DNA of 64,000 nt. It comes from Bugula neritina (taxonomy: Eukaryota; Animalia; Bryozoa). Shown in pieces: positions 32,440 through 63,906 of the stretch (the first letter of the stretch is position 1; the number at the start of each line of letters is the position of its first letter). The position numbers and the translations under genes were made by a program. The stretch spans positions 11,350,480 to 11,414,479 of the forward strand of contig OZ037771.1 of assembly GCA_964035545.1 (NCBI GenBank). Reading direction: 5' to 3'. The notes below the pieces were generated by a model. It did not search any database, was not told where the DNA came from, and saw only the letters and a program-made list of their open reading frames with translations.

Positions 32440-35400
32440 TCAAGTTGGTTTGTAGCATTTACAGAGTCTTATCAACACTCTAGCACCAGTCTTAAAATCA
32501 TCATATGCTTTCCATTTACACTTCTGACTGTAGTGTATTTCATATCCATCACAGTCGTTATTCCTCCCTTGAGCCAGAGCTCCATCCATCTGGGTGTACT
32601 GTCCACACCGGCATATTCTGGAAGATATAGGTTTGTTATTAAATCATGTTTAAGTATTTTATTTCAACTAGAAGTTGGTCACATATCCTAGGAATAAGTA
32701 TTCATTTAGAATAATTTTGTCTAGAAATTTTTCTCTGTGATTTTTTCAACTTGAGTCATAAAAAGCATTGTAATCATTAATTTAGCTTTTTAAATGTTAA
32801 TATCCAAGATGCTTTTGCCTTGAAGTTTCAGAATTTCCTGTAACGACCATCAGCCTATCAACATAATATCGTTACGTAACTATTGTTATTCTTTCAGTAA
32901 CTGACCACTCCATTCTATTCAATCGGGAAGTTTGTTTTATTGGTCATTTCATTGTCCACTATATGCTGTACACGTGCTCAGGTCGTGCCCGGAAAAGTTG
33001 AAATCCTACGATAAAAGCTTAAAGTCATACATCCTAAGCATTTAAGCGTTGCATGTTGTATACGTAGATTATTGGAACGGCAACATTTTTACAATTCAAA
33101 TTTCCTTTTCGGGGACTTTTCTATTTTGAAGGGGAATTTCACGAAATGATAGGATTGTGAGCATTACACAAGTTGTTATAGATTCCATCCATGTCAATGT
33201 ATAACTGCAGTCTTTGATTGACTACCCCACTGTGAATATTGTTCCAATAGATTTGTTTTCTGAAATTAGACATTTACATTTTGGTTCATCATGAAAATGT
33301 AGAAATCTGGCCCCAAATGACCTCATAACTAACCCATATGTAGATCTATACTTTGCTTTCATGAGGTTAATAGGGTGCAACTTGGCGTATATTGAATATC
33401 AACACTGATCAACTTTTCCTTCTACTTCGCTTTTCTCTCTTGAATTTTGAAAATTTAGATACTTTTTATTCGTGGGATTTTATACTAAGGCTGATTTACT
33501 AGGACAAATCATGCATATAATTTCAACTGCAGGTATAAAATATAAGTATTATGTAATACCTGTTGGCTTTTGCTACATAAATTCTAACCAATACTTGAGA
33601 TGTGCTAACTATTTGCTAGAACCACTGGCTAATTATAGACTCGTCTATCGATACTTACCCTACCATTCACTAAGGGTGGGGGCTATGCTAGTTGTACCCG
33701 GCCATTAATATAATTTTTGCATAAATAACATTACCAAGAGTTATATAATTATTAGTTAGGCAAGTAACATAATATGCAGTGTATAGCAGAAGGATATAAG
33801 CAATTCTAGGAAATTCATAAAATGAGTTAAAAATTTGGAAAATGGATTCGATTTGGTCATGGAGAGATCGAGCAGACATCAGCAAAACTTCAAATGTATC
33901 TATGACTCAAAGTTTATTTATGGCTATGTTGTCACTATAATTATCATGGCAGCCATTGAAATGCAGCAGCAGATAGTCAAAGGCAGCACTTTAACTCACC
34001 TTACGATGTCTTTTTGGTAATACTTGGTGTATGCGACTTGGGGTTGACAGAGTGAGTCAGAATATGGACTGTATACACTGGCTATTTGTGGCTTTACTTT
34101 AAATCCTGACCTGTAACATATAGCACTCATTGGTTTTAATAAACCGTTTGGGATTTCAACTATTATATTTTCTTTAGCTAAAATTTGTAAACTTGGCTCA
34201 CATATTACGTAAAATATTTGATATATTAGCAATTGAAAACCAGGTTGTAAATCACTTTATTTTTTGTTTGCTTCATTGAATACCTTTTATTATTTTAATT
34301 TTCTGTTATCACAGCTAGAAATTGTCTCAAAGCTTCAACTGTGATTTACATCTAAATGTTCTCCAAGTATTCCCACCATATAGCATCACCTATGGTATGC
34401 CAATCACTGGCTTCATTTGACTCAGGTTTATTTGTATGTTCAACATAGACAATTACATTTTCGAGATAGAAATATAAATATTTGGACAGTATTACGGTGC
34501 CAGTCAATGCTGCGGTTATTTACCTGGTTGGCTGCCTCCTATATATACATTGTTTGCTGCCGTGGTACTCTATCTGTACTGGGAACTTATTAGGATGACT
34601 AGTGTCCTCATCACTACTGCAGCTTAGTGCTTCTTCTCTCTCTTCTGAATGTCTATCCACACCAGCCTGCATCTACAATGTATGCTTCAGATATATACTC
34701 CGGTATATTATTACTTTAGTTACCAGCAGAGTTTACATTTCATCAAAAGCATATTTTGAGTTTCTGTCATTAAAACCGTTTTTACTTGACAAGTTTCTAG
34801 AAGTTTTAGCATTCTCAGCAAAAACTATAAAATAAAGTTATTAATTTTAAATTAATTAAATCATTTGCTCTGATGTATGTATGATAATTATTTGGTATAA
34901 TTTCTGAGCGTTGAAATGCAAGCAGCTCATTATTTGGAGATTGAAGTTTTTTCAAATGTTTGTACTTTAATAATGGGGGAGGTCATTTTTTATTACCAAT
35001 ACACTAAATTGTACATTTTCTTAAAAATAGTATAAATATTATATAAATATAAATTTCAATAAATTTCAATAGTAAATACACCAACTAGGCAACTGATGCG
35101 TTTTGAGGTATTTTTTGACCGTAATTATTTATATAGTATATACAAATATACCAACAAAGCTGTATGATACAATTAGTTGATGGGCAAAAGATGCAGAATT
35201 CAAGAACCAGACATTCACTCAACCAGTTCTCAACAAATCAACAATTAACTGCACAAAGATAAAGGTGTGAGTCTAATGATGTATTGTATAATCTAACAGT
35301 CACTGCAGCGAGTTACCCACCAGTTTGCTGACTTCAGGCAAATCTGAAACAAGTTTAGGTAATCCCATTGAAGAGGTTTGGTTATGGACTGGAGGATTCC

Positions 35401-35716
35401 CTGTGAGAACATCAGCCCTTGTCATTCCTATAAGCTGATTAAATGGTGGAGAAGACAGCGTCCACGATGGTTCAAGCAGTGGAGATTCAACTAGTGGAGG
35501 ATCGATTGGTGGAGGGTCAACCCTTGGGCCCGCAGGTTCTGAGACTGAGCTAACCTCTTGGCCTACATCTTGAGAGACATTCTGATTCTTGGTAATTGCT
35601 CTCCTTTTCGTGCCACCTCTGGTAGAACATATTTTATGTGAATGCATCTCGGTGAGTATCAACACAACCACCTCTTGCAGTCGTTTATAGGGTATTGATA
35701 ACTGGTCATGTATCAT
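32440..35716 (-). CDS. Uncharacterised protein with tandem H-x4-C...C-x-C modules, paralog A (about 240 aa; start codon uncertain)
   Basis: Exons 35716-35321, 34672-34524, 32617-32440(TGA), intron phases 0 and 2. C-terminus PNKFPVQIEYHGSKQCIYRRQPTR|ICRCGQYTQMDGALAQGRNNDCDGYEIHYSQKCKWKAYDDFKTGARVLIRLCKCYKPT is homologous to paralogs B and C with the same intron position. Confidence 0.8.
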
Positions 35717-37596
35717 TATGTTGCACGGTCTTCATTTCTTCCCTCTTATAGTAGTGGTTCCACTACTGCTTTGGTTTTTACAAACTATTATTTCCAACAA
35801 AGTTTTTTCCTATATATTGTTTGCTAAAAAACATTTCAAATCAATTTGTAAGTATAGGAAGAATGATGAAGCAGAATTTCAAGGCTTATAATTCTTATCC
35901 AATCACATAGCATTATTATAAGTTGATTGGTTGTCTAGTTTATAAGGGAGCACAAAGGAGGTAGCTCTGATTGGGTATGCAGGGTCTAACACACACACAC
36001 AACACACACACACACACACACAACACACACAACACACATACATGCACACATCTCTGCATAAATCTTGTAAACATTTAGGCATTTGTGTTTGCAAAAAGTG
36101 AATGTGTCTAGCAGGTGGTGTTTTCAGAAAAACATGTTTTTGTTACACATATTCAGGTGTTTTAACTTTCAAAACTATTCATGAGCTTCTCTCAGTAGAA
36201 GAATGCTTGGCCAGTTTCAGTATGTCTTTCATATTGATTTCATGTTTACTATTTCTACAATTTTGTTTAATGTGGACAAGCCTCAATACCTGAATAAGAG
36301 AGTAGATTGTTCTTGTAAGACATGGGTATATTTCATAGTTAAAAAGAGTCCTTCAATCTCCTAGTTTTAGTTTTCACTCCAAACCATACTCTAGCTATAA
36401 ATTTCATACTTACCTCATGATTATCCTTCTATTGGAGCCAAAAAGTGCATTACTATATCAAAAATTACACAAAAAATTGAAATAATGGACCGCTTACAAA
36501 TTACTTTGATATAGTAACTGTAAGAACTTTGGATGCAATAAAGACTAAAGTCTTTAGGTCGATCTTTAGATACATCTGACTTGCAAATGCCCACAACCTA
36601 CTAAACCATTAAATATAGCAGTCTAGACATAACAGCAATAATAACTTTACAACAGTTTTGTTATAAAGTTCAGTAAATAGTTGTAACCTTCAGTTTGTAC
36701 AAAGATTGTATAAGCTACTTGAATAATACATTAAAATTTTGACTCCTTAAACCTCCTTTTACTGGTCAGTATTTTATTGCTTATGGCGCCACATTTTTGC
36801 GTGTCTGGCCAACAATATAAACAGTAAAACACAGATTGCATAGCAAGTTTCAGTTCTGTTTCAGTCAGAGCATTCCAGGAACTTCAACTCATTCATAATA
36901 ACAGATTTCAACAAGGCTTTAATGTTTTGCTGCTTTTATCAGGAAATGAGTTTTTTGTATTTGTAATTCAATCTTCTTTCAATTATTTCTTTTGTGAATC
37001 AGATTAAATAAAAATATTAGTTTACTGTGAAAATGATGTATATAAATTCTGTGATATTGTTGTTGACCCAAATGTAAGTATATGATGAAAGAGAATTAAT
37101 TTATTTGGAAGAAAGTTAGTAGGTATATATAAAGCATTGCACTGCTTTCATTTGAGATATAACAATAGTTAAGGATAAGTTAGAATATATAATTAAAATA
37201 GATCAAAGTTATACTTTTTCAAAATAAATTTTAAAAATCTAACCATATATGCTTTTTAATTTACATTATATGGTATACTGCATACTATTGCAATAGTTGC
37301 ATGTACATAATTGCAAGATAAGTAAATTATGGAGTTTTGACTACATGTTTTTATACCAGAAAATTTTGTGTTTTACATTACTGCATGACAAGTAATGCAT
37401 ACTATTACTTATTATAAACCAGGAAACTTGGAGAGCTCATTATAAGTGGCTACATTTACATAGGAAAGCGTATATAGCATAGTCATCTACTAAACAAAGT
37501 TTAAAACTCATCAAGAGGGCTTTGTTTCCCACCAGTTTATGGGAACAAAATAATATATGAGTTGTCATCTCATTTAGAATTTCATAGAATCTAGAT

Positions 37597-37904
37597 CAGG
37601 GCCAGACGCAGTCCACAGCCTATATTTTTGTGGCCTTCGAGGGCATAACAAATAAAATTATTTTTCACACATGTATGAATTAGAGGGAAAAACCACCTTT
37701 TAAATGTCTTATTTATACACATGCTACAAAATATTTTGTTTGCAGCAACTATTAGGACTTTATTGTGTAATGGTTCATAAAAATTTTGAATAAAGTATTT
37801 TGAAAAATACTGATGCTGAGGCCCCCAGCTCAAACTGAAGTTTACAATGTGGCATGAAATTTCCCTTTCAGTGGCCCTCACTCTAAAAAGGTTGGACACC
37901 TTTG
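37597..37904 (+). mobile_element. hAT (Charlie-like) MITE family 2, copy 2
   Basis: Perfect 8-bp TSD ATCTAGAT (37589-37596, 37905-37912), matching the NTCTAGAN hAT target preference. Homologous to 3620-3941. Confidence 0.8.
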
Positions 37905-39053
37905 ATCTAGATTCTAGATGAATATTATGATTTATGCTATTTAACATGGTTAAAAGCATTACTGTTATATGCTATGAACAAATTGACGAATGGGCGCAAT
38001 GGCAGGAAAAGACAGAAGTATTTTGTTTAGGTTATGTCACATGAGCACACAACTCTAGTTGTGAATTACATTAAATTAAAAACTTTTGAATAAGTCAAAA
38101 CTGGTTTTGATTTATTTGATCTTTACAATAAAAATTACATTTATCAAAAAACATGGAGCCTATAATATTAACGCTGCAAGTAATCATTGTAATATTGTTG
38201 CATCACGCTTGTTAGTATAACTTCTCTCTATTAACTAAAACTGACCCTGTCTTATATAATATAATATTCCATTTATATGAACTCAATACTTTAGTTTATA
38301 TTAAAAGTTATTGAAGCTTTGTTGAACTATATATACTTTTCATCCTGTGACAACAGTAATATGAAATGCTGCTATTGTGAATAAATACACCAGTCGAACC
38401 AAGCTACCCACATACAGTAAATTTGTAAGCCACTGGATTTTTCTTAACATAAATATAAAATATTACACCTTACATTATGTTGCACCCTATTTGTGCTTCA
38501 CCGACCCCCCCCCCCCATCCCGGGCCCCTCTAATCAAATTTAGCTGGCTCGAGTTTGACTTCAGCTTATAAAAATACCAGCTCCTTGTCCACGATTCTGC
38601 TTTTTCAATGATTTTTACATTCAAATATAGTTTCTTTTAATGTCTTTTACTTCTGTATTAAATAAAGTGATCTGACCCAACTGTGGTCTAGTGTTCCAGA
38701 TCATTGAGCATGTCCTCACATATCGCGTTATGGTCATAAATGACATGACCTAGTTATAGTTTCTATGTTTCCAACTCCTCTCATTGTTCATAACAAATAG
38801 TTCCACCAACAATATAGTAGTATTTGACATCACTGTATATTGCATCATCATATTTTCATCTAGTTTGAAACCTGCAGGTAAAACTCCAATACTGTTCAGA
38901 CATATAAACACCAATATATAGTTCAATTTAGCAGGAAAAAAAAATTCTTGAATAAAAGTAATATATTTCAATAATCTCAAGGAAATGACATATTTATACA
39001 AGAAAGAATTTTAGTTACCTATATAATATCTGATATAATAAATTTTAAACAAG

Positions 39054-39557
39054 GGAGCGGCTGTGACCTAGAGGTTAGAGCGCTTGGTTATCTCTCTAGA
39101 GTCAAGACACACTTTGCCGCACTTTAGGCCGTAATTACGAAAAATATCAGCTATTTTTAATATGTTCGGGCTGGAGTTCTCAAAGTGCGCTATTGGGTAC
39201 AATCTATGACATCTCATTGGACATTTATATCCAATGAATTTACTCGAACGTCTTCCTGTCCAATAGGAATCCGCCGCAACTTTTTTTAATCAATCAGTGC
39301 TTGATCCTAATGTACCGCAACGCTGTACAGGAAGCTCAGACATTTGTAAAAATTGTGAACATTTTACCTTACGGCCTACGGTGCGGCAAAGTGTGTCTTG
39401 GGGGTTAGTAAGCACGGCGTCATGGGTTTGAGCCTCAGTAAAGGTCATTGGTGCTGTTAATAATGCCATAATTGCTCCCGTGCCTCATCTTAGCTAGTCT
39501 TTAGCTCTATTTAACAAAAACCTGCTTCATCAAGGTTTTCTCACAGAAATTTTATAA
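39054..39557 (+). mobile_element. tRNA-derived SINE interrupted by a MITE
   Basis: A-box-like TGACCTAGAGGTTAGAGC and B-box-like GGGTTTGAGCC, with a 14-bp TSD AAATTTTAAACAAG (39040-39053, 39558-39571). Homologous to 49216-49409. Confidence 0.8.
39091..39405. mobile_element. MITE family 3 nested inside the SINE
   Basis: 32-bp inverted repeats CAAGACACACTTTGCCGCAC..TAGGCCGTAA at 39103-39134 and 39369-39400 (2 mismatches). Flanked by duplicated (GG)TTA and absent from the other SINE copy. Confidence 0.8.
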
Positions 39558-40362
39558 AAATTTTAAACAAGAACTAAAATTATAAACAGTCATTCGTAAA
39601 TTTTGATACTTTAAATGCCGCTCTAGCTATTGCTGCTGCTGCTGCTGCTGGAGTAAATTAGTAATAGTGCTATATTCCTCCCAGCACATCTATGGTTGAT
39701 GCCTTAGCAAGTATAGAAACATTGTTTAATGCCTCTTTAGTGAACGAAGTCTGTTGTAAGTATTTATAATTCAATTTGGTATTGTATAAACCATAAACTA
39801 CAATTTCTCTTAATTTTGCAAGTTTCTATTGTTTTAAATGGAATAATCTTGCTATTAGTTTATCACAGTACCACAAGCTCCCTTTCAACTAAAGACTGGT
39901 GCAGAATGAAGTAAACATATAAAATGGGTCAAAATAGTTGTCCTCAGTCTATTAATAGACAGATGTACAGCTAACCTCAGATTGGCCAGGTTTAAGAACT
40001 GCACGTTTAAAAATCAGTCAGTTATTTCTGTTCGCAATTGGTTTAAATGTGAGCATTGTTTTTACTGCAACTACGTATACTACCTATGCAAACCAAAAAG
40101 TTACCTATCACACTGACGTGGCCTTTCCCAGTCGACCCGCATTCCTGCAGTCCCATTATTAAACAGGTCATTGTCAGGTTATAGACAGTTGACCTAGTAA
40201 TAGTAGTAGTAGTAGCAGGGCATACAAATTGTGTATTGTGTATAGAAAATTTAACAGTACTATACGACATATGATCATCTGTTTGAATTTATTATTGTTG
40301 CCAGCTAAGTAGAACGGCAGTATTGTTTTAACAAACTAGCCTGTGGATAAAGTTAATTCACT

Positions 40363-42314
40363 ATGACCAGCAACATTGAATTCAAGGTAAGTAAATATAT
40401 GTTATACTAGTTACAGTTGATATAATATGATTATTCAATGATTATAAAAAGTTATAGTTTACTGTATTGCATTTTATAATAAACACAATGGTATTGCAAG
40501 GTCTGTTCTAGCTTGAAAATTTTAAAAGATGTTAGCATCTATAACTCATTCGATGTTTTTCAAAATTGGTTTGACTTCATCAACTTGCATTTTAACTCAA
40601 GAAATCTAAATTCAATAATAGGAATAAAGTAAAGCCCTTATCTTATGTATTTTCACCGTTTCTTAGCGTGACAGATTTTATCCTCATAATAATGGGCCAT
40701 AATATTATGTATTGCTGATTAAAAACTCCTTGAATCGCTTGAAAGTGGAGTTGTTGTGACAGAATAGCCTAAAATTATACACTGTACTGTGTCGAGTTTG
40801 TTGGTGAGTAATATGCAACATCTATTCAAAAATTAAGCACAGTACTGATCAGTCGATTCGCTTTGTTTTACATAATTTTTAGTCTCAATTCCCAAAAATA
40901 AAGTATTTTATAACATTTCTTCACTCTGGGGTAAGTTTATGCTGCAATAGATTTCTATGATATCACAATATCCATAACCCTGCAGGTGTTTGAACAAACA
41001 GAAGATGGATGGAAGCGCCTGCTGAAGGTATGGATGTCAGCCCACCTGACTGAAACTGTCGCAAGTGGACTCTCCTTCTTTTCAACAGAGTTTGGTCACA
41101 ACTTGTTAGAGTCTGGGCTTCAAAAGTGCTACAAGAGTATAAATGCTCCCCTGGTGGTAGCTGTGGACATTAACACCCAAGAGGTAAATAATATCATGTT
41201 TAGTCAATATATGACCTTGACCAGAAAGTGTGAAACTAGGGAGAAAGTAGGACTAAAAGATTCAGCATTAAAAAATAATAATCTAACTAAAAAGTTTTTA
41301 CAACAATAAAATGATATCCTTAAACATACTCTCGCATGACAACACAAGTCTGTGACATCTCAGAATATTCTGAAGTAAAATAAACGGTATATACAAAGAA
41401 TTGAAACTGAGAACCAAGTTGTATTTCTATATATACTTTCTAGTTATAACAATAATAATATGCAACATATTCAAATTCAAAGCTAAAATGCTTTTGATCC
41501 AGCTTACACCTAGCTGACTCAAATATTTCTTTAATCTCTATGCGTGGTCACCTGCAGTTATTTATAAGTCATTAAGTCCTTTTAAAATTACACCATGTAG
41601 GTGGTGGGTTTTATGTGGAATCAAATCGTAAACAGAGACTTTGATGCAGAGTGGGTTGGGCCTGCTGGATTGAGAGGATATGGTTCCTATACGGAGGAAG
41701 AACACCAACAGCAAGTTGACGCATACTTGGAGTTCTGGAAGATGCTGAGTGACCGAGGAAACTTTTTTGATCATTTCGAGTGAGTTGACTAATACTCAGT
41801 TGTAACAGTTGGAGTATTTACTAGCAGCAGTATAGTTGCAATATGATTACTTCAAATGCATAGCAGTTATAGCATGTTATATCGCAGCTCCTAAAGATTA
41901 TAATAAATCACAGACAAAATTATACAATTATTGTGTTTTTACTACACTGTTGAAATTAAAAGTCTATAGAATGATAATACTTCAAGCTAAAACATCCATT
42001 GTCTAATTATCTTCTATTTTTGCAGAGTTGATGAACTGTTTGACCTAATTTTTTTATCAGTCTTGAAAGAATATCGTCACAGAGGCATTGGATTCAAGTT
42101 AATGAGTAAAAGTCTTGAGATAGCTAAAGAGCTAGGTTATAAAGTAGCTTTTAGTAACTTTACCAGCAAGTACAGTTACAGTATTGCGTGCTCCATGGGC
42201 TTCACACCTATTGCAGAACTGGACTACAAAACTCATTACAAGAACTACTTAAATATACCCAAAGAAATAGCCCAGATCCATGATAAAGTCGTGGCTATGG
42301 GAAAGAGGTTGTAG
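40363..42314 (+). CDS. GNAT-family N-acetyltransferase, insect-type arylalkylamine/dopamine N-acetyltransferase-like (229 aa)
   Basis: Exons 40363-40386, 40986-41183, 41601-41779, 42026-42314(TAG), 690 nt in frame. Acetyl-CoA motif A LSVLKEYRHRGIGFKL, a preceding FDHFEVDELFDL segment and TSKYSYSIACSMGF are typical of insect AANAT-like GNATs. Confidence 0.85.
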
Positions 42315-43423
42315 AACTGAAAGATCGTATCACAGCTCATACGATAGGATATTGTGAACTGCATCATATGGTTCAAATGCTAAAAAACTTGTAGTCTATT
42401 TGAGTAAAGGCTTGTTCATTCACATAGAGTGGAGTTTAACTTATAATTACTTATGAACTGCTATACTGAGCTATTGGTTTTTAAATTTATATGTAGGATG
42501 CTATCAATAATAATTTGACTAGATTTGCATAGTTGTGGCTATAATATTCACAGTCATTAATCATCAACAGATCAAGTATTGTTCCAGTTAAGGTTTTTAA
42601 TATGTGTGGATTACTAGTTCATTTTATTAGAAATTGCTGCATTCCAAATGAATATTTAATGCTTTTAGTCCCATCTTATTATTCTTGATATATATTTTTA
42701 TTGTTTTGTAGCTTTTAAATGGTTGAACGATTTTTTAATTATCACTTTTATGATAAGAGAGTTGCACTTTCAACAATTAGTACACATGTACTGTCTTAAT
42801 ACAGCTAGTATTCCCAGTGATTGCAAGCAACATTGTGTGAACTATATTGTAAAAAGGCACATATTATGTATAATATGAAAGTTTAAATGCTTTTCTAGTA
42901 AACTTTTTTAATACTGAATAGCTTTTAGAATTGCGAGTTTTAAGTTCTTATTGTAATTGAAAGTTATGCAAATAAAAAATTATTGACATGTATCCTTGAA
43001 TAAAGGCGATATATTTTATTATAGTCTCAATAAACTGATATATTTACAAATGAAAAGTTTAGTTACATAATATCTGATATATAAATTTTAAACAATAAAC
43101 AGAATTATGTAATTTCTCTCTCCAATTTTCCGATTTCTGAAGTATCACAATATTTTTTAGACAAAGTCATAAACAATTAAAAAACAAGTTATATAATATA
43201 TGTTTGTTTACAGAATAAATATTTTTCTTGAGTGCAGCATACAGTATAGCAAAGTAATTATACTTGTTTATTAAATGAATAAAAATATTTCCTCATTGTT
43301 AGATATTTTTATGTTGCATATAACATACACTTTACCAATGCTTGGAGAAAGACGTTATTTTATCAATAAGCACTGCAGCTAAATTTTTATTTTGTCTTTT
43401 TTTGCAGTTTAGATGAATGTTAT

Positions 43424-45487
43424 TCACTCCAACTTAGTAGAGTAGCATTTACAGAGTCTTATCAACACTCTTTCACCAGTCTTGAAGTCATCATATGCTT
43501 TCCATTTACACTTCTGACTGTAATGTATTTCATATCCGTTTGTTTCTTCAGTCAACCCGGATGCTAGAGTCTTGTACATCTGCTTGTATTGTTTACAATT
43601 ACATACCCTGCAAAGAGCAGACAACTCATAAATATATAGGAAAAAAGGAGTTTAATATTTTTAGTGTCCAACAGCCAATAGTTGGCAAAGCTTCTTATGT
43701 TAACAGATTATTTAATTTGCCTTTTAAATTTGAAGAAATATTAGGTCTTATTCAAAAGTATTATTAACATGTATGTTTATGAAGACAATTTTAAATGACT
43801 TTAATAGTTTGATCTGCGTTATTAGTATTATTAAAATATTTATGCTAGGAATATACAGATATACGATTGTTAATTGTAATGAAGCTGTACCTTTGAGAAT
43901 GCTGCAAATAGTAGTGAAACAAAGCAGCTACTAAATTCATGAATTTTGTTGGAAAAGGTTAATTAATAAAAATGAAAAAGAATTGATTTTTCAGTAATCT
44001 GTAATTTAGTAATCAGTAATACGCATAATTTATGCACAAAAACTTCAACTATTCTTTGATTGACACCAACCTGACCAGGTGTTTTTCGTAGTATTTCATA
44101 TGCTGAACATTTGATGGATCTGACGGTGACATATCATGTGTTATGAGGGGAGACAACTGCTTTACTTTATATCCTGATCTGAAAGTAGAAATGTGCAAAT
44201 ATATGTAATTATAGTAGACTTCAAAATATGATTGGAGTTAGCTTTTCTATTAAGCTGTCTATAGCTTGGTTTCAAAGCGTAGAATAAATTGTAATTGTAA
44301 ATTGTAATACAGACTATATTATAATTTATTACATGCAAAACCTTGAACCTAATAACAATTATGTTAATTTGAATAATATTTAGTGTATACATTTGTATTA
44401 GTTTATGAATAAAATCGTATTAGTTTTGTTATAAGCCTGTACTAAATGTAATCAACTACAAATATATGAAAATAGTTTTATGAGCCTAATTACTTAAGTT
44501 TATTTCTTTCTAGTACAAACAAAACCTATGCAAGCAAAACCACTTACGTAGAGAATTGAGAGGTTTAGCATGTATGATACTTGAACACTTATAGCAGTAA
44601 TTCTTGAGATACGCTACTCTTGAGATAAAAGCAATTATACTGGTATTTAGTCATGACTTGCGAGGAGTACGATAGAAAGCAAATAATATAGTTCCACAGT
44701 TACTTACTTAGTCTTTTGCCTTTGGTAGCTGCATTTCTTGCTAGAATGGTACTCAATCTCCACTGGGTATTTGTTGGTGTGTTCAGTAGGTGAAGGGGGA
44801 AAGTCATCGTCCTCACCTTCATCTTCACTGGACAGCTGCGGACTCAATGACTGGATGCTTGGCCAATTATTTATATTACTTTTTATATCATTATTATTAT
44901 TATATGTTGAACTTGTCATGTCCACCCATCCATCTTGTGCTAAATTCAACTACAAAGCAAAAATAGGTTACAGTTGTAAGCTGTTATTATAAATAAAAAC
45001 AAAACACACTTATATCTGAAACTTGACCATACCATTTAAAAAGTTGATTGTTGCTGTAGTTTGCAGTAAACATGTGGTGTCTTTACCTTCAGCAGAATTA
45101 AAGAAGAATTACTAATTGAGAAGTACTCACTGCAGTAAAGCTCTGTCTCATCTGCTGAGGTTGCTGCTGCTGGTGAAATGAGTCACAATTATGATTTGAC
45201 TTTGATTGAAACTGGTCAATCCATCCAGAGGCGGGTCTTTGTCGGAATCCAGGGCCAGATCCTGATGGGACGGTATGGTAACAGTTATATGAGTAATCTT
45301 GCTGTTCAGGGATTGGCTGGATGTGATGGTATAGAGGTCTGGAATATACACAGCTAGAGGTCTTTGCTGATGGGTTGAGATGAAAGGTTGGCTTGTGACC
45401 AGCTGACTTTCTTATGGCTCTTACAGTCCCATAGGTTTGGGAATCGTTAACCTTGCTTACTTCGAAGAATCGTGGATTTGCAGGCAT
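43424..45487 (-). CDS. Uncharacterised protein with tandem H-x4-C...C-x-C modules, paralog B (260 aa)
   Basis: Exons 45487-45131, 44949-44708, 43607-43424(TGA), phases 0 and 2, 783 nt, with an in-frame stop upstream of the ATG. C-terminus TNKYPVEIEYHSSKKCSYQRQKTK|VCNCKQYKQMYKTLASGLTEETNGYEIHYSQKCKWKAYDDFKTGERVLIRLCKCYSTKLE. Confidence 0.85.
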
Positions 45488-46226
45488 TGTAACTACTACA
45501 ACTTCATCACCCGGAGTGCGAGGAACTAGTGCAGTGTCAAGCTTTATATACGATGAGGAAATGAGATGGTTATCTCTTCAGAATGTGCATATCGTGCGAG
45601 CTCACATTGTTTGCTGGAATTTCCAAGTAATACACATGACTGATGGAGCCTTCCTAAACTATTGAACAAGTGTCAACAAGTGCTACTTTATGACATTAAA
45701 AAGCTATAAATACAAGATTATAACTAACAATGGAATGCATAGAATACGTATTGATCTAATGCTGCTAGCCAGAATAAAATGAAGTTTATTATCTAAACTA
45801 TAACTTGCAGCAATATCTAGCCAGCTGGGCTTGCAAGGGGTAGATTTCTTTTATATGGGTGGTAGACTATGAGGAGCCTTGCATACACCAGCAACTAAAA
45901 CTATTATAAACAATAAAGCAATTAAAAGAGTTTAACCGAACAAGCCATAGATTAATACTCTGTTTACTGATGAAAGTAACGTATGATCACTTGAGGTAAT
46001 TTTTGTTTTGTCCTTTAAAATTTCACGTTAAAGTGGTTTTTTTGCAAATGGCAGAACTTAGTTAGCAAGCCAGAGGGTAGCAGCTTATAGCTTTCTAGAG
46101 TTTCTCATTATGAAATTTAATCAGCATTCAAAGCTGCTGCAGATTACAGCTACTCATATTCTTGATAACCTGCAGCTAGAATGACTTTAAAACATGAGGT
46201 TGTAGGAAGTCACAATGTGTTATTGA

Positions 46227-52197: not shown

Positions 52198-52245
52198 TTG
52201 TATTATAAATAAACTGTACTTTAGTACAGTTTATTTATAATACAA
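52198..52245. repeat. Inverted repeat with 23-bp perfect arms and a 2-nt spacer
   Basis: TTGTATTATAAATAAACTGTACT-TT-AGTACAGTTTATTTATAATACAA. Confidence 0.95.
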
Positions 52246-53573
52246 CTCATGGAAAGTATCAGCTAAGTTAAACTTCCTTATGCTTGTAGCATATATACAC
52301 ATGATAAGGGTCTAGCATATTAGCATAGACAACTAATTAGTTGACTTTAATTGAAACAGTTTTGATTTATTATGGTTTGAAAATTACTAAATGTGTTTTA
52401 TTATAACTAGATGTATCTGTCAACTTTCATTTAAAATCATTATTTATTTTAACATGATGGCTTTTTTCATATTGAATAACTTTTCTCACCAATGATGCAA
52501 AATACTTTTTAAACTTTTTTTCATTTCATAGTAAAAAAATAACTGCTTTGTTGGAATTAAATTATTTAATAAATATAGACTTTAATTGTAAATTTAAAAT
52601 AGAAATGACTGTTAGCATAAATAATTTTTGGATGACTAAATTTTGCAAACAATGTATCTTACTTTCTTTTTCATTGAGCTGTAAAAGTAGAGTAATAATA
52701 TATGATTTCTAACTTTTACAGTCGTTCATACTAATGGTTTTTCACCTAATGTAATGGGAAACTTATGACGAAATCCTTAAGTCAGTAAATGTACTTGGAT
52801 CTAATTGAGTAATTGTGTATTCTATAGTTAATCTCTTTTATAGTTCCTTTTAGAATTATTTAACCACCAATTCCATTACTATACAGATTTTTTAAAATAC
52901 CATGTAATTTACTACATATCTATCTATTTATATAATAAAAGTGTTGATTATTTTGCTTAAGAGATCATAGAAGTAAACCTGCCTTTGAAAAATATTTCTC
53001 CCTAATTAAGCAACTTCCTGGTATTGTGCAATCTATTCAGTCAGTTTTAAGTTCCTTATGTGATGCTGCTGTCAATGTTTGTTCTAAAACATTGAATTAT
53101 TGCATTTTGAAAAGTTTTATCAATCATGGGTAAATTATTGAAATAAAAGCTTCCATTTTGATATATATTTATGATATGAAACTTCACAATATATAACATC
53201 CAAACTTACATTTATGTATAAATGTTTACCCTTTAGTATGAAGGCCTACACTTTGTTCTAAATACTGATACCTTAGTACTTACACTTAAGTATTCATTCT
53301 TTAGTGTTAACTATGTAAAATGCTAGAATACCTTCAGTTGTAAATCATGGACAGACGATAAATTTTGGACTAAAATATTGATTACACAAAATAGCTGATT
53401 AACATCAATATAGCCGCATAAACCGACCTTTCTATTATATTTGATTTTTACTTCTGATTTTTTTAGCAAGTTCATTATTAGTTGGTTTATTCTTAAGCTG
53501 CAATTTTTTGCCTGACTATGTATGGGTTTATTTAATTTAAATGCTTTCATTAGTTTTAAATTGAGTATGTTAT

Positions 53574-56063
53574 CCAAATTAATTTTAGCTAAAGCACTCT
53601 TTACAATTACTAAATTCTAAAACCCTGCCTATACTGACTGCAGTGACTTTGGCTGCACATACTGGTCTTCATTATTTCTGTTTATATGTTAAATGCCAAA
53701 ATAAACCCAAGATATATCCTATAATAATTGTCTGTTATATAATACATCTACGAGTGAAACCAAGTGAGAGGTTATCATAGTGTAACGTGAGAGTCTGGTT
53801 ATTTTTGGCTTTTGCTCTAAAACTAGGGATAGAATTTTTGAGAAATATCTTGAAGTTTTTACTGAAGGATCAAAGGATAAAAATAATTATAATATATCAT
53901 TCCATTTTCCGCTAGACTAGTGTATAGAGTAGATAACTCTGAGGAACTGGTTTAAAATAGCCTAAACTCTGGAAAATTCTTGTAGCTATAAGATTACTAA
54001 TGATCAATCAAATGCTTACTATATAAGTCAAGGTTTCTTAACTATTGAAAGCTCTTAAGTTAAGTGAGAACTGATTTTTTACAAAATATGTCAAGACTAT
54101 TTTTTAAGAGGGGAAAGAGAACCTCCATGACAATGGAGTAAAGAATAGTTACAACCACCTGGTATGACTTGCCACCAGGTGACACGTGCTCATATTCTGC
54201 TTGTATGGACTGTTACAATATACTGACTAAGTAACACTAGGAAAGTAGTAGTATAGTCATACATGTCAGTTAACACCTAGTCATGGAAGTACAGCAGGAA
54301 TTACAAAATAAGAGGAATAGTTACTTGCAAATTTTAAACATAGCTTTTGTTTATATTGTAAGTTTCTATATATATCGTGAACAAATCAAACACCCCCCCC
54401 CCCAACTCAATTCTTACAAACTCAAGCTAAATTGACTCAAAATCTTTTATTAAAAACTCCTTCGTAGCAAAAGTCATGGAAATAAATGATGAGCTATAAA
54501 AGGAAGTATAAACTACCCATCAGCTTAGATTTTCTTATGTATGGAGTATAATTATAAGAAACTACAAAGTGGCAATCTGCTGTGCTGTGCCCTATGGGAA
54601 TTAATGTTATCAACATGCATACCTTTTACTTATAGACCAACTTTATAGAGTGGATTATTCAGCTGTATGATCATATGTTTTTCTTAACAACTATATTATG
54701 ATGACAGCACTTGACTGCATATAGTTTTTGAGGCTACACTTCAAGACATATATATAAAATGGCAATTTTTAAAAAGTTTTTTTTAATTTGATATTTGATC
54801 ATGCCTAATGTCCCAAATTAATTCTATAGCTAAAGCACTCTTCACTATTACTAAATCATAAAACCCTGCTATACTAACTACAGTGATTTTGACACAGACT
54901 GGCCTCTATATGATTTGGGTTTATATGTCCAATACCAAAATAAGCCTAAAATATATCCTATAATAATTACAATTGTCTATCATGTAATACAGCTACAGCA
55001 AGCGAGAGGTTATTAAGGTGCAAGTCTGGTTATTTTTGGCTTTTAATCTAAAAATAGACATAAAATTTCTGAGAAATATCTTGAAGTTTTTACTGAGAAA
55101 TCAAAGGATAAAAATAATTATAATATATATCTTCCTCTTTCCCCTAGACTAGTGTATAGAGTAGATAACTCCGAGGAACTGGTTTAAAATAGACTAAACT
55201 CTGGAAAACTCTTGTAGCTATAAGATTACTGATGATCAATCAAATGCTTACTGTAAGTCAAGGTTTCTTAACTATTGAAAGCTCTTAAGTTAAGTGAGAA
55301 CTGATTCTTTGCACAATATGTTATAGGACTAATTTTAAGAGGGGAAAAGAGAACTACCACAGTAGAGTAAAGAATAGTTACAACCACCTGGTATGACCTG
55401 CCACCAGGTGACATGGGCTCATATTCTGCTGGTATGGACTGTTACAATATAGTGACTAAGTAACACTAGGAAAGTAGTAGTATAGTCATACATGTCAGTT
55501 AACACCTAGTCATGGAAATAGAGCAGAAATTACATAATTTGAGGAATAGTTACTTGCAAATTTTAAACTTATAGTTTTTATTTAGATAGTAAGTTTCTAT
55601 ATATCGTGAACAAATCAAACACCCCCTCTCAACTCAATTCTTACAAACTCAAGCTAAATTGACTCAGAATCTTTTATTCTAAACTCCTTCGTATAGCGAG
55701 AGTCATGGAAATAAATGATGAGCTATAAAAGGAAGTATAAACTACCCGTTAGCTTGGATTTTCTTATGTATGGAGTATATAGTTATAAGAAACTACAAAG
55801 TGGCAATCTGCTAACAACCTACTGTGCTGTGTCCTATGGGGAATGTTATCAACATGCATACCTTTTATTTATAGACCAACTTCATAGAGTAGATTATTCA
55901 GCTATATCATCTTGTTTTATGTAACATCTGTATATAACTACATTATATTATAATGATGATATCACATGACTGCAGATAATCTCTGAGGCTACACTTCAGG
56001 ACACATAACATTATGACTTTTTAAAAAAATTCTTTTATTTATTCTTCATCATGTCCAATGTCC
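53574..56063. repeat. Tandem segmental duplication of about 1.24 kb (units about 53574-54812 and 54813-56063)
   Basis: Long colinear blocks are shared, e.g. CTAGACTAGTGTATAGAGTAGATAACTC and GTAACACTAGGAAAGTAGTAGTATAGTCATACATGTCAG, with scattered substitutions and indels. Confidence 0.93.
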
Positions 56064-56234
56064 CTGTTGGGGCACATGAATTATTTCAATAGTTATAGCT
56101 ACTTCTTATGAAAATGTTTTGCAGCATATGACATATGCATAGTCTATGAGTTTTATAACACTTGGTGTACCTGAGTTAGCATATAAACGGTATTTTGATA
56201 ACCTGAATTATCATGTGCATATGAACAGCATTTG

Positions 56235-56341
<107 letters not shown>

Positions 56342-57410
56342 GAGCTGTTAAACTGATAACTTAAATATAGTTCAATATTGAAACAAAATCTTGTCTATAA
56401 TAAAACTTCCTTAACACTACATCATCATTCTATGAGCAGTTTAATATATGCAAAGCTAAATAAAGTGTTTCCCTTATTTACTATAGAGCTCTTACACCAG
56501 TATGACTAATACAATGTGATGTAAGCATTTCCAATCCTATATTATGTTAAGTGTAATATCATACAAGGTGTAAATGCTGTTGTGCACATTGTCGTTATAA
56601 TCAGTGTAGAGGAGACAACTCTAATTCACTTTACTAATCACCACAATTAGACTAGAGTGTAATTAATGTTAAAGTATCTATTATAAATTGAATGGGCATC
56701 TACAAGAGAGAAACTTAGTAATAGCTGCCTGTGTCTGCAGTGTTGTCTTCATCTCATGGACATTGTGCATTGTGTTAGTTTATGACTAGAGTGGAAAGAG
56801 AGAAAGCCAATTATTCTTTAAAGAACACTATATTAATTATATGTAATTTTCGTGTGAAATGTAATATGCCTTTAAAAACTTGCAGCAGAAAACTGATTTC
56901 TCACGACCTTTTTCAACTTATATATAAAACATTATTTGAAACAAGTTAATTCAGAACATGAAATTCTAAATAAACACTTGTGACTCATGATGCTAGTTAT
57001 ATAGAAAGACTAATCTAGAAACTAAATGACTTGTAACAGCACAACAGTATATTATTAGAATATGCATGACTAATTAATGTATGAAAGTTTCAACCTGATT
57101 AGATAAATGCGCATATGTACATTATATAGTAACAACAGGTAAATGCATATGTATATTATAGTAACAACAGGTAAATGCATATGTACATTATATAGTAACA
57201 ACAGGTAAATGCTGTGATAAACAGTGCTGTGTGCTATATTTCGTAGTAATGACTAATTATTTACTGATATACACATTTCTGTTTTTATTTTAATCAATAA
57301 ACATATTCTACAGATGTAGAGATGTTGATTTTTACTTACACTAGGTTCACAATTATGGGTTTGATCCTCTTTATTTTATGAGCAGACAATTCTTCATTAT
57401 AAATTTTTAT

Positions 57411-57482
57411 ACCCACATGGGATTTGAACCCGAGACCTCTGGCTTGCAGGCTGGCCCACTAACTATAACACTACAGGGGCCA
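57411..57482 (-). pseudogene. Degenerate tRNA-like sequence or SINE head
   Basis: The minus strand has the B box GGTTCAAATCCC and an A-box-like TAGTGTTATAGTTAG, but the stems are imperfect, so it is unlikely to be a functional tRNA. Confidence 0.5.
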
Positions 57483-59634
57483 CTGTGTAATCTCAACACT
57501 GCATTCAAGCTAGGAACATTTACTAGTACTAGCAGTAGCTCTGTACTTGCCTCTAATTAGCAAGACGTGCAGGTGCAGTAATGAAAAAATGAGAAAAGCC
57601 TGTATTCTAGATTAATAGAAATGTAGCAAAATAAGTTATTTTATTGTAATAATTGTGTCCTGCGCCTCAAACCAAAATTTAATAAGAACACCTAAGAACT
57701 TAGCTATTAAACTTTCCTCACTGCTGCACCTTAGAGTAAATGTCGCAACCTATCTGTTGACAACAAAAATGGAATTATTGTTGAGTGACTTTTGCATTTA
57801 CACTAACGTAATAGTTTCTATGAGAACCCTAAGGCTAAGGAAGGAGTTTAGGCAGTCTACAGGATATAATGGTTGCACCATACTGCACTTGAGTAATGCT
57901 GACAGCATTAGATGGAAGGCTTTTAAGGTTACACATCAGCAAAAGTCTAATTATATTAGCCATGTAATTCTTTACAAACCTAATACTAGGTATTTACAAA
58001 ATACACAAGCCAATGCTACTGTAAAATCCATTACGTGGCCTAAAGTAATACTGACTATATATAGGTTATTTTTAGTAACATGGAACAAATAGTAATATTA
58101 TAATTGTTACATCACATTAACTCATAATTGAGGTTGCATTGTGTGAATAGTGACTAATACATTGTAGTTATATTTTCAGTCACACCATTAGATGATTAGA
58201 TCAATTATAGACACTAAATATAGACTCTTTGAAGCTGCTCTATAGAGGATGGTTATAGAACAATAATATGTTTACCAATAGTCTTAGTCCATATATTGTT
58301 TGCAGCTGTTTCTTTTCCTAACAGTAATATTCTGGTTTTTGTAAACTGCGTAAACGTAAAAGCGGGAAAAAGTGGCGGAAACGTAAACAGGAGAAAACAA
58401 CTCAGAAAAACTCCTAGGGACTACTTTTAAACATAAAATCCTGTTTCGTGAGTGTGGCCTAATCAGGAAACATCCAAATCGTCGGCGCACAAAGAGTTTA
58501 GTTACACAACTAGTTTTCATTATGGTGTTGAGAATTAAATTTTTATCTGCTTAATAATGAACTTGTAAACTACAATGGCGAGCCCAATAATTGTTATTCT
58601 CATAGTTGCATGGATACCATGACTACCCACCAAAACCATCGATATTTTACTATTTAGTTTTTCAACGAACATTCGTACAACTTGAAGCTATTTAGCCTAC
58701 ATATTATTATCTTTTTATCAAACTGTTAGTTAAAATAAAAACCTATTCTATTACAGATTACAGTAAAAATAACCCAATATTTATCGATGCATGTATGATG
58801 TAATTATTTTACCAGAAATATTGTCAAAGTTATCACATTGATGTTCATCATTATTTTCCAACTTCAATTACATAAAGTAGAAGTATCATTATTATTTATA
58901 GTAAAAGGATGCTATTTCCCTCTACCCACTAACTATGTGTTCTATTTACCTTAGTGTGATCATGCTGTTATCTAAAACAAATTACCATGTTTAATTACAA
59001 GCAAAAGACTATATGTTATTGACAATGCTGCAATTGAAATTTTAACTATTCAAGGTTTGTTTACTTTTGACAATTAACAATCAGGAAATCGGCTGCATGT
59101 TTAGTATGTTTGGTGGGTTAACCAAATATTTCAAACATATGGACTAAATATCAGCTTGAATTTAGGCTGCTATAGCTCAATGTATATTACTGGTGTTCCA
59201 GTGAGTATCACTATTAAGGATGTATTAGTGTGTTCATTTAGTCCTGTGACTTCACTATATATATAGATTTACCAATTTAATTTCAACGAAATGTTACACA
59301 CGTTGGTTACAGCAGGATATAAAATAAAAGAGGAAACAGGTGGCGTGCATGATGACATGAAGTTTACGCAACTGAGCGCAAAGCTCTGTAGGTTAGGAAG
59401 ATTTCCCTTTACTTCTGTATATGTAACCAGTTGCACAACTTACAACACAAGTAGATTTTTATAATGCCAGACAATTCAATCATATATACTAGTTTGATTG
59501 TGCAAACAAAAATGAAAGGAGAAGTGGGAAGCTCCTTGATTATTCTAAGAATTATTTGTACCAGGTTTGAAAGTTATTTTACAATATCCTGTTAAGTTTG
59601 GGTAAGAGTTACAGCACAATAAGTAACCAGTGTC

Positions 59635-59820
59635 AGGTAGAAATAGCACAGATATAAATGGCACAAATGGAAAAGTATTATAGGTAAAATGGCACATTTT
59701 CAATATTATGGTTTGAACTGGGGGTTTGGGGTTTGGGGGTTTGAGTTTGGGGTTTGGGAAAATTTAGCATTATAATGTCCCATTTTTACCTACTTTTCCA
59801 TTTGTGCCATTTTTACCTAA
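59635..59820. mobile_element. Foldback/MITE-like element with a G-rich (GGGGTTT)n core
   Basis: Arms AAATGGCACAAATGGAAAAGTA..GGTAAAATGGCACA and TGTCCCATTTTTACCTACTTTTCCATTTGTGCCATTT are inverted and internally repetitive, flanking a telomere-like core at 59719-59758. Confidence 0.65.
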
Positions 59821-62800
59821 AATCAAGTAACGGATATTACGTCTATATATGCCACCAAGGAAGAGAAACTGGGAACTTATAGCATAAATACAATACTCTC
59901 ACAGAGTTGAGCAGAATATTGTATTGAGGTTAAAGCTTTAAAGCCTGTTTTGCTCCATTTTGTAATTTATATACCACACTTGACTCTTTTTACAACGGAA
60001 CTGCTGAAATACTAAACTAAATAACTTATTAATATAAGACTCGCCATCCTCAACTTTAGATAGCTCATAGTCTGTATCTCTCTTTGCAATGGTTGACTAT
60101 TCAGTACAGCCAATATAGCAACTTGCTCTTGGCTTTGCAATCATTTGTTAGTAACTGTAACTGATTTGAACAAAACCTATCTAACAATACACTCACTATA
60201 AGTAAAGAATTGGCTTTCAAACATATCTGGTCACCATATAATGTATGTTTTATATTTGTTGTCCAAATACTATAGCTTTATTTATAACACATGTTGAGAA
60301 AGTAACTAAACTTTGCAGAAAGTTACACTGAAATCTATGTTGGTTGAGATTTAAGTATGACTTGGTTTAGTGAGATGATGCAAGGAAACACTTCCTTAGA
60401 AGCTCCTTGAAGTCAAAGAGTTGGTTACCAGCAAACCCTTTAGTTGAGTCAACCAGCTACTAACTATTCTAGCAGAAAATAGTATTTAGTTTGGTATAGT
60501 AGTGGTTTACAAATATATATGACATTCTGAAGTAATGACTAAGAGATGGGATTCGCTGCCAATATGTAGTGGAAAATTTTACATTTTCATACACATTGGT
60601 AACTAGCAGTAAAAGAATGCCACAGTATGACAGTATCCAACTGATGGGAATGGAAAAAACACTTACTAAATAAGCAAATACTGGTATATTATTTTACCAT
60701 TTTATTGCATAATTCCCTTATATAAAACGTGCTCATGGGTTTCAATTGTTTATATTGTAGTTGCAGAGCAATGTAAGCTCATTTCACATCCCTTTGTCTA
60801 ATACCTCCTTTACGTGACATGTATTGTCATCATCATTCATCAGCTAGAAGCGAAGTGAAGCACGTGACGTCCCTCACGTCATGTGCTCCAAGTATAGCTG
60901 AGCAATACACCGCAGAACAATAGAACAAATGATTATATCATATTGCGAAATCTTGCCCTGATAATGAATATTAATTGAACAATATCCAGGCCATGCAACT
61001 CATACAAGAGAAACTTATGGTTAAAATAATAAGCTTTGTGAGTCTTATATGGGCAGTCATGACTCAACTAAGCATTAGTAATACTGATCATTTAATACAT
61101 AAAGTCACTGATTGCACAAAATAAATGGTCATATTATTGGTTTCATTACCTTAAAAGGCGTTGAAACAGTAAATTGTATATGGTAATATGACTGTGCAAT
61201 ATCTGAGAACAGCAGCATTCATGCTTATTGTGCTGTGTTACTCATATCTTTCCTGTATATTTCAACTTGTTTCATTACTATTTCATTTTTTATTTAAAAC
61301 TTATGAACTTTTAAACTGTTGGCATGTATTCTATCAGATAACAGTTATGCAAAATAAAAAGTCTATAATATAAACAATCAGTACTTTTACAAAGAAGAAT
61401 TACTTGAATCATGTGATTTTAGCAATTCTGGTATCCATGACTCTGTATGGTTGAGCTGTAACTTCTACTTGAGATGAGAGATCCATTTGACTCCTGTAGG
61501 TTCATATCTGGGGATGTAGCAGAACACTCCGAGGCTGTCCTCCTGCTACTGGATGGAAGTGGGGGGGGGGGGGTAGAGAGTCCCTCAAACTATTGAACTA
61601 TCAGCTGCATGTCATCTTATATTCCAAGGCTGAGGCAGTCTTGCTACGGCAAAACTCCCCATACGTTGTGTATGGGTTATAACGATGCAATGTAATTTAA
61701 GATTATCAAAATAATGAGAAAACCGTATAATTTACATTTTTTCTTATGAAGGAAAATTAATATATGTAAGCAGTGAGTTTTCAAACAGGCATTTTGTACT
61801 GACTATAGCTAATAGTTTTAAAGCTTATAGTATTTAAACAGTAAACCTATACTATATTATCAGAAATTTTATCTTCTCAAAGATATTATATTACATATTT
61901 ACAAATATACCCCCTTCACTGTGGTTAGGATTCTAATATTTACTCTAGAGAAAGTTGAAACAGCTGATGTAGCTACTCTAGATGGGAAACATGTTAGAAG
62001 AAGTTGTGTTTTTAAAGATTTCAACTTGAAAATCAAAAGGAAATGCATTAGAAATATCGTAGATCTTGGATCAAATTTTCACTGTTGTCGCCTTTAAATG
62101 AAGGTCATGCCTATATATACACTACGTTTCCATTATGGCATTATATAGGAATTGATTTTTCATTCATTCATTCCATTCATTCGCATAATTCGCAGTCATG
62201 TAAACGCAGTGCTACAGAAACTTATGAAACTTCCAGCTGCTATAAACATTAATTTATTGCAATTTCAGAGCTGCAGTTTTTGGTGCATCACTGAAGTAAG
62301 AAATATATTCAATTGACTCGTAATTCTTTTAGAATAATAAGATATTTAACATTTTTCAGTATTATAAAATAATTCCTGCACTGGGATACGCACCGCAGAC
62401 CTCCAGTTCACTAACCATAACACCACATGCGGGACTACTGCATGGGTAATCTTAACACTGCAAGTAGGAAGAATTTTCGAGAAGTTTTTGTGAAGTTGGA
62501 ACTTTAGTATATGGTCAGCGGAAGACTTGGGGAAAGACAGGGTTTAGATGTTTTTAAGTGTGCTATAAGATCTTCTACTATTCAAATTCTATAACTTCTA
62601 CACCATTTGGACTGTGGACCATCTTGAGATGCAACTGTCAACACAAATAACTGAGCTGCCAATATTTGACAGCACAGGGCTAGTTGTAAGCAGCACACAT
62701 GACACATCATCAGTAGCTAACTACTAGACGTGATGTCACCTGACCAACTAGGGTTTCAAGTCCCAAGGTCGATGTATGCAGGAAGTAGTCACATGTTTAG

Positions 62801-63728
62801 TTTAGCGGTTAACAGTCATAAGATGTGGTTTATTAAAAGTCTTCTGGTCACGATTATTCAATAGTCTTTGAAACAATGACTCAATAGCAGTTGCCCATGC
62901 TTCCTACTTCAACAAGACTAGGTTATTATTCGAAGACTTGAATTAGTCAAAATTTGGTTTGTATTGCATGATAAATTATTGAATGTGTATAGAAATTTGT
63001 TTTAAAGAGCTACTAAATTAAACATATTATATTTACCAAACCATAAATGTTAGGAGAATTTTAATAATTGTTTATAATTTCTTGATTTAGTTGTCAAGTT
63101 TATAGGCAGGCTGTTGCAGAAATATAATTTCCTTTATTCTTTAGATTTTACATTGTCATACAAATTATGAAAGTTGTTCTTTAAATGTAGATTTTTACTG
63201 TAGATGAAAAGACAGATGAGTTCTCACAGATGTACAGCCAAATAGCTGTTTTGCCATTCTAATTATAGTAAATTATAATAATTATACAAACAGCTGAGGC
63301 TGTATGATACATAGAGTCAGACAAGAAGCTTTAGAGGTCTAAAAATAGTTATTTATTTTATGACTAATATGTTTAGATTTACTACAAAATTCAAGGATCA
63401 AGGCAGTATTTATTTTGTTGTTGACCAATAACATTATTGTGTATAAGAAACTGGCAAAATATTACATAATATATACAGGGGCATCCACTGCACCAATAAA
63501 TAGTCTAAAGCTGTATATATGAATAAATAAGTCACTAATATTGTGTTGAAGAAAATGGTAATATAACATCTATATATAGCAAAGACTTGAAACCACATAT
63601 AAGTGAATTATATAAATAGTTCCTTCAAAATATTTTTGCTAAAATATTAAAAATAAATAAATAAAAAAACAAATGAATTTAGTTTAATTTGTTTATATTG
63701 TGATTGTATTGTGATTATATTATTACTG

Positions 63729-63906
63729 TTAGGTTGGTTTGTAACATTTACAGAGTCGTATCAATACTCTAGCACCAGTCTTGAAGTCATCATATGCTTT
63801 CCATTTACACTTCTGACTGTAATGTATTTCATATCCATCACAGTCGTTATTCCTCCCTTGAGCCAGAGCTCCATCCATCTGGGTGTACTGTCCACACCGG
63901 CATATT
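63729..63906 (-). CDS. Terminal exon of paralog C of the H-x4-C...C-x-C family (rest of gene beyond the window)
   Basis: 178-nt exon with acceptor CAG at 63909-63907. It encodes the same peptide as the paralog A terminal exon, with 8 nucleotide differences that are all silent. Confidence 0.8.

Follow-up and report, generated by a model that had tools for sequence, protein, structure and literature searches.

A previously undescribed domain family with a probable double Cys3His metal site, encoded by tandem genes of the bryozoan Bugula neritina

What do three related genes on the minus strand of a 64,000-nucleotide (nt) stretch of Bugula neritina DNA encode, and does the His- and Cys-rich domain at the end of their products belong to any family already described? 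The stretch, called the window hereafter (GenBank assembly GCA_964035545.1, contig OZ037771.1, positions 11,350,480 to 11,414,479; C7:11350480-11414479 in our contig labels), holds genes A (32440-35716) and B (43424-45487) and the terminal exon of a gene C (63729-63906), which an earlier note on this DNA had placed at these positions and had taken for a family of three members sharing a duplicated putative zinc module. Our analysis indicates that this is a real, conserved and previously undescribed domain family and, judging from the pattern of its residues, that the domain carries a probable double Cys3His metal site. What is new is the domain family; nothing in the evidence so far points to a new biological system.

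The three genes were examined by six-frame searches that covered the whole assembly (216 Mb in 321 contigs). In all searches the exons of the window were used one by one, and proteins annotated in databases (P0004 and others) took the place of spliced products. The last exons of A, B and C match one another at E 1e-24 or better and the last exon is under purifying selection; moreover, all three genes carry two tandem modules and are significantly similar to other members of the family. Coordinates and strand of the earlier note were borne out in this way, and the reading of the splice sites agrees with its claim that A and B share phase-0 and phase-2 introns; in both genes the first intron is of phase 0 and the next of phase 2. 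The frames are intact, the splice sites canonical and the intron phases compatible in A, B, C and in three further paralogs, D, E and F, described below.

The gene model itself had to be corrected, in that it omitted a middle exon of 36-37 codons, here called exon Y, lying between exon X, which encodes the start of module I, and the last exon, Z. The earlier model with two introns looked consistent because exon Y is flanked by phase-2 introns, so that skipping it keeps the frame. In both A and B, exon Y is bordered by a canonical ag acceptor and gt donor, and an alignment shows it to be conserved throughout the six long-type paralogs. Paralog F (locus L012, contig C2) has no intron between exons X and Y: a single long open frame covers both, and within it the first motif runs into ...RSGPQIKVIKK...KKYYRKDLVR before the last intron is reached. 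Furthermore, the sequence of exon Y is part of annotated Bugula neritina and Watersipora subatra proteins (P0004, P0005, P0007-P0010); tblastn of P0004, P0009 and P0046 places a match on exon Y of gene A at 33945-34112 (E 4e-6 to 1e-4), and exon X of gene A is also matched by the annotated homologues. A JGI contig of 1129 nt contains a 330-residue open frame across the counterparts of exons X, Y and Z and, since this frame is uninterrupted, the contig looks like the complementary DNA (cDNA) of a relative.

With exon Y present, module I is therefore H-x4-C-x45/46-C-x-C, where the earlier note had counted nine residues between the first Cys and the C-x-C, and the domain is about 110-120 residues long instead of about 80. 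Module II is H-x4-C-x18-C-x-C. In the predicted model described below, exon Y would encode a long beta-hairpin and the last strand of module I, and would lengthen the hairpin of module I.

The two modules are homologous: their profiles align over 34 columns (hhalign probability 97.6%, E 3.5e-12), and modules I and II are true repeats, derived from the internal duplication of one unit, which reads E-x-H, short loop, C-x-[YWF], hairpin, R-x-C-x-C. Across about 40 sequences with a mean identity of about 25%, the eight His/Cys positions are invariant or nearly so. The same picture emerges from 18 compact members (described below), whose mean column identity is 27% and in which the positions that are invariant or nearly so are, in both modules, the His, the first Cys and the C-x-C and, in module I, also the Arg, the Glu at position -2 from the His and the Tyr at position +2 from the Cys. 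In a few members C-x2-C or C-x3-C replaces C-x-C, a change of spacing that metal knuckles tolerate.

The earlier note had proposed to model the domain with AlphaFold and to compare the result by Foldseek, and this gave confident models with no match to any solved or predicted fold. AlphaFold2, run with an alignment of 39 rows, returned for P0004:132-252, the B. neritina orthologue of gene C, a model with a mean predicted local distance difference test (pLDDT) of 95.1 and a predicted template modelling score (pTM) of 0.81, and for a compact member of Mya arenaria a model with pLDDT 87.8 and pTM 0.77. Both models are all-beta, with the same order of elements and three strands per module; in each module, the His is predicted to close the first strand, the first Cys to stand immediately ahead of the second and the C-x-C to follow directly on the third. 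The confidence of these models comes from the alignment, since the stored single-sequence ESMFold model of P0004 is poor (pLDDT 0.35). Foldseek comparison of both models with the PDB gave template modelling (TM) scores of about 0.2, which is noise level, and no usable fold match came from BFVD, from the ESM Atlas (features and structure) or from the wide and second-look VIA structure searches.

How far does the family extend beyond the three genes of the window? The count of three given in the earlier note was too low, as the profile of the last exon finds at least 20 loci in the genome. Five long-type genes stand in tandem at the locus, namely A, B and C in the window and D and E just beyond its end, and the sixth, F, is on contig C2. 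Furthermore, compact genes encoding about 100-110 residues occur in tandem groups on contigs C6, C2, C7 and C5. One of them, at locus L014 (3686-4157; G000:C6:14531685-14532156), has two exons, encodes about 108 residues and contains a single phase-2 intron, in module I, at the position equivalent to that of the X/Y intron of the long genes. In this compact member the likeness of the modules can be seen by eye (CRYDQIRE..SG as against CKYDRIKDQKTG).

A HMMER search of 1.84 billion representative proteins gave 39 matches at E<=1e-3 (best 7.5e-21), with a query that was the 48-position profile of the last exon only, so that very distant relatives may have escaped it; word-index protein searches contributed only a few further sequences. 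One match at E 6.6e-11, P0021 (ENA, 1569 residues), was rejected as a false positive, since it is a tandem repeat in translation, which the profile matches weakly and in part at many places. All of the named relatives are labelled "hypothetical" or "uncharacterized" and come from Bugula neritina, Watersipora subatra, Mercenaria mercenaria and Mya arenaria (for example KAF6036550.1, XP_067948164.1 and XP_045199355.2), that is, they are limited to bryozoans and two clams, two distant lophotrochozoan groups; the other relatives are from assemblies without a species name. A metagenomic contig bearing one relative has sparse gene calls and the pol of a long terminal repeat (LTR) retroelement, and has the look of ordinary animal DNA. 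Homology links the three groups, long bryozoan, compact bryozoan and clam-type, to one another (hhalign probability 97-98%, E 7e-11 to 5e-15), and tblastn of the members back onto the window reaches E values down to 1e-35. The last exon of gene C is about 93% identical to B. neritina KAF6036550.1, so the present genome is that of a bugulid bryozoan near to, yet distinct from, the assembly deposited for that protein; the B. neritina orthologue of gene C also looks positional. In Watersipora, the genes of the family have RefSeq models with isoforms. The similarity between copies ends at the exon borders, except for 55-80 nt of intron.

It remains to be asked whether the domain is known under another name. 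The earlier note could match it to no named zinc-finger family, and this holds for the sequences of Pfam and the PDB as well as for folds. Pfam gave nothing above threshold on the exon pieces or on ten full-length homologues; no PDB sequence was matched by a single sequence and none, at E<=10, by the profile. The accessions and locus tags of the family are not mentioned in the papers searched, and a general search of the literature on Bugula and zinc likewise returned nothing relevant. The only Pfam match at E<0.05 on the exon pieces was MSL2-CXC (PF16682), with E 0.037 and 14.6 bits against a cut-off of 26.7. Domains of the CXC type (MSL2-CXC, tesmin/EZH2) are likewise Cys-rich and have C-x-C motifs, but they hold a Zn3Cys9 cluster and lack a conserved His, whereas the bryozoan domain has a conserved His in each module. 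Membership of the MSL2-CXC or tesmin CXC families was rejected, as the match was below threshold on one exon piece only and absent on the full-length homologues, and as six Cys and two His are conserved.

Other zinc domains resemble the bryozoan one in part. The ligand order of the SWIM zinc finger is CxC...CxH, the DM domain has intertwined CCHC and HCCC sites, and zinc ribbons are built as CxxC...CxxC. SWIM and DM share with the domain described here a C-x-C pair, one His and one more Cys, through which SWIM and DM bind zinc, and DM site II is also HCCC. However, the ligand order of SWIM is reversed with respect to H...C...CxC, and this order, together with the lack of a Pfam match, led us to reject SWIM (PF04434); unlike those of DM, the putative bryozoan sites are sequential and not intertwined, and DM (PF00751) was set aside because the predicted structure is all-beta and no Pfam match was found on the exon pieces or the full-length homologues. 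Zinc-ribbon fingers are similar in being small, sometimes tandem beta units closed by ligands at strand ends or in knuckle-like loops. They differ in having two CxxC knuckles instead of His-x4-Cys...Cys-x-Cys, and in that two units are predicted here to form one beta-sandwich; no sequence or fold match to solved zinc ribbons was obtained. The cystine-knot growth factors (NGF/TGF-beta), with an NGF-like H-x4-C...C-x-C resemblance, were rejected for want of a signal peptide and of any Pfam, PDB or fold match. The N-terminal beta-sandwich of vaccinia virus A46 (PDB 5ezu) was among the closest systems compared. Among the genome matches compared, none to Bcl-2 was adjacent to one of the family, and one candidate Bcl-2 open frame is a Bcl-2 piece interrupted by a tandem repeat.

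The features of the three genes are collected in Table 1. The earlier note had found the N-termini of A and B impossible to align by eye, and they are indeed unrelated, low-complexity sequence: in the six-frame search of the genome, exon 1 of gene A matched only itself, and so did exon 1 of gene B. A short N-terminal motif is, nevertheless, common to these otherwise unalignable regions. It lies at 35588-35602 in A and 45407-45421 in B, in L013 for C and D and in L016 for E, and reads R-A-I-T-K in A, D, E and Watersipora P0009, RAIRK in B and RALTK in C and P0004; by its sequence it may be a linear motif, for example a basophilic kinase site or a nuclear-localisation signal. The start of gene A is uncertain, with an ATG at 35716 and the next in-frame ATG at 35647, and from the letters upstream the latter may perhaps be the true start. 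In that upstream sequence (35734-35750), a TATAAGA stands only 28-34 nt from the ATG, and an out-of-frame ATG opens an upstream frame of nine codons. In paralog D, beyond the window (L013, about 7300-7480), the intron that begins right after the exon X donor holds a long repeat that would read, in frame, as (Gly/Ser)n.

Table 1. Coding exons of genes A, B and C and a putative promoter element in the window
Feature	Position	Strand	Description
Gene A exon 1	35321..35716	-	variable Pro/Ser-rich N-terminal coding exon; donor CTG|gtgggt, phase 0
Gene A exon X	34524..34672	-	acidic Ser/Asp cluster and start of module I (HPNKFPVQIEYHGSKQC...); phase-0 acceptor, phase-2 donor AG|gtaaat
Gene A exon Y	34000..34110	-	SGFKVK...KYYQKDIV; phase-2 introns on both sides
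Gene A last exon (Z)	32440..32617	-	found by exon search of the genome
Gene B exon 1	45131..45487	-	variable Gln/Pro-rich N-terminal coding exon; donor GCA|gtgagt, phase 0
Gene B exon X	44708..44949	-	acidic SSEDEGEDDD cluster and start of module I (YPVEIEYHSSKKC...); phase-2 donor AA|gtaagt
Gene B exon Y	44071..44178	-	SGYKVK...KYYEKHLV; phase-2 introns on both sides
Gene B last exon (Z)	43424..43607	-	found by exon search of the genome
Gene C terminal exon	63729..63906	-	third copy of the last exon of A and B
TATATAAA, possible TATA box	45543..45550	-	56-63 nt upstream of the gene B ATG; read from the sequence only

What the domain might do is suggested by its charge, by its place in the protein and by one fusion. 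The isoelectric point (pI) of the domain is 8.2-9.9 in 25 of 26 proteins, the domain is C-terminal in all members, and an acidic Ser/Asp cluster of the casein-kinase-2 type stands directly before it in members of the long and clam types. No N-terminal signal peptide was found in the 26 full-length members inspected. The only multi-domain fusion seen is P0028 of Watersipora subatra (XP_067951882.1, 383 residues), in which a C3HC4 RING pattern and a second Cys/His-rich stretch are followed by a spacer of about 180 residues and then, at the C-terminus, by the domain. The C-terminal position in TRIM-type ligases is held by a target-recognition domain. P0028 resembles the TRIM-type E3 ligases with PRY/SPRY or NHL domains in placing its domain C-terminally, behind an N-terminus with a RING pattern and a long spacer, and is unlike them in that the domain is related to SPRY or NHL neither in sequence nor in fold. 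Membership of A and B in the TRIM/RBCC family was rejected, as their N-terminal exons have no Cys/His pattern and no Pfam match and the genes of the window have no RING.

Taken as a whole, the explanation that we favour, and consider somewhat better than an even bet, is that A, B and C, together with D and E, are intron-bearing tandem genes for intracellular proteins in which a double His-Cys3 zinc domain acts as a binding module. Each gene would give an intracellular protein made of a disordered N-terminus specific to the paralogue, an acidic Ser/Asp cluster and a basic C-terminal domain of about 110 residues. Two Cys3His metal sites are the natural reading because the invariant His and Cys are predicted at strand ends and no signal peptide is present, and the arrangement is best read as one zinc ion in each of the two modules, holding together a beta unit of three strands. 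In particular, each unit would most likely clasp one zinc through its His and three Cys, and the two units are predicted to pack into one small beta-sandwich. The domain could then bind a negatively charged partner, either nucleic acid or an acidic or phosphorylated protein, and the variable N-termini, as adaptor or regulatory regions specific to each paralogue, might couple it to different partners. A binding module is favoured because the domain is basic, is always C-terminal and stands behind a RING pattern in P0028. Some points weigh against this explanation: three disulfides could, in principle, arise among the six conserved Cys, a basic charge does not by itself prove nucleic-acid binding, the domain of P0019 is acidic (pI 6.0), and the RING of P0028 falls below the Pfam cut-off (16.8 against 27.9 bits) in what is a single fusion. 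A bolder version, which we regard as doubtful, would see here a new zinc-stabilised lophotrochozoan fold serving as a recognition module for nucleic acid or for phosphorylated or acidic protein, put to three uses (on its own in mini-proteins, at the tail of long disordered adaptors, and in a RING ligase as the part that binds the substrate), with a rapid tandem expansion reflecting an arms race in defence or reproduction.

The domain might instead be a very diverged member of a zinc-binding family already described (a zinc-ribbon derivative, CXC, DM-like or SWIM-like), overlooked by searches that were too insensitive. Small zinc domains are indeed hard to match by structure, and the notes of the VIA searches caution that a weak or absent match is no proof of a new fold; however, Pfam returned nothing on ten full-length homologues, the PDB profile search zero matches at E<=10 and Foldseek TM scores of about 0.2, and the ligand order H...C...CxC differs from the known patterns of SWIM, DM and zinc ribbons, so that we hold this origin to be unlikely. 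It is still less probable, indeed quite improbable, that these are disulfide-bonded secreted or extracellular Cys-rich proteins (toxins, antimicrobials or matrix components) devoid of a metal site. An even number of six conserved Cys, and small proteins encoded in clusters that expand in tandem, as in many secreted effector families, would fit such proteins. The absence of a signal peptide in all 26 full-length members inspected, the one invariant His at the equivalent position of each module, the disordered, Pro/Gln/Ser-rich N-termini of the long type and the fusion of one member to a RING architecture of cytoplasmic type all speak against such proteins.

The restriction of the named relatives to two distant lophotrochozoan groups is a patchy distribution that could also be explained if the copies were mobile DNA derived from a transposon or a virus. 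Yet the copies are few (about 20), all different, arranged in tandem and provided with conserved intron positions and unique N-terminal exons; their similarity stops at the exon borders apart from the short piece of intron mentioned above, and gene C has its positional-looking orthologue. As neither Pfam on the homologues nor the fold searches matched any transposase, integrase or viral fold, and as the metagenomic contig inspected looks like ordinary animal DNA, a mobile origin is very improbable. Hardly any weight, finally, can be given to the idea that some or all copies at the locus are unexpressed gene relics without a product, to which the uncertain start codon of gene A might point: genes A to F have intact frames, canonical splice sites and phase-compatible introns, purifying selection is seen, and the RefSeq models with isoforms in Watersipora and the cDNA-like contig of a relative likewise argue against it.

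Elsewhere in the window, minisatellite-like tandem repeats at 166-690 (with a repeat unit of about 20 residues), 1545-2078, 11943-12543 and 20067-20400 give long periodic open frames, which are repeat artefacts and not genes. On the minus strand at about 10250-13950 there are exon-like open frames with ankyrin-repeat similarity (Pfam Ank, E 0.0026, sub-threshold, at 13514-13948) that, by their sequence, are probably parts of an ankyrin-repeat gene which has nothing to do with the His-Cys3 family.

If the zinc sites and the fold hold, the double His-Cys3 domain would be a new structural type among the small domains clasped by metal. On the same condition, a name and a testable hypothesis would become available for about 20 genes per bryozoan genome, and for clam genes, that are now only "uncharacterized". 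The family is small, sharply conserved and confidently modelled, which makes it tractable for the determination of its structure and the finding of its partners, and the RING fusion of Watersipora offers a handle on its function.

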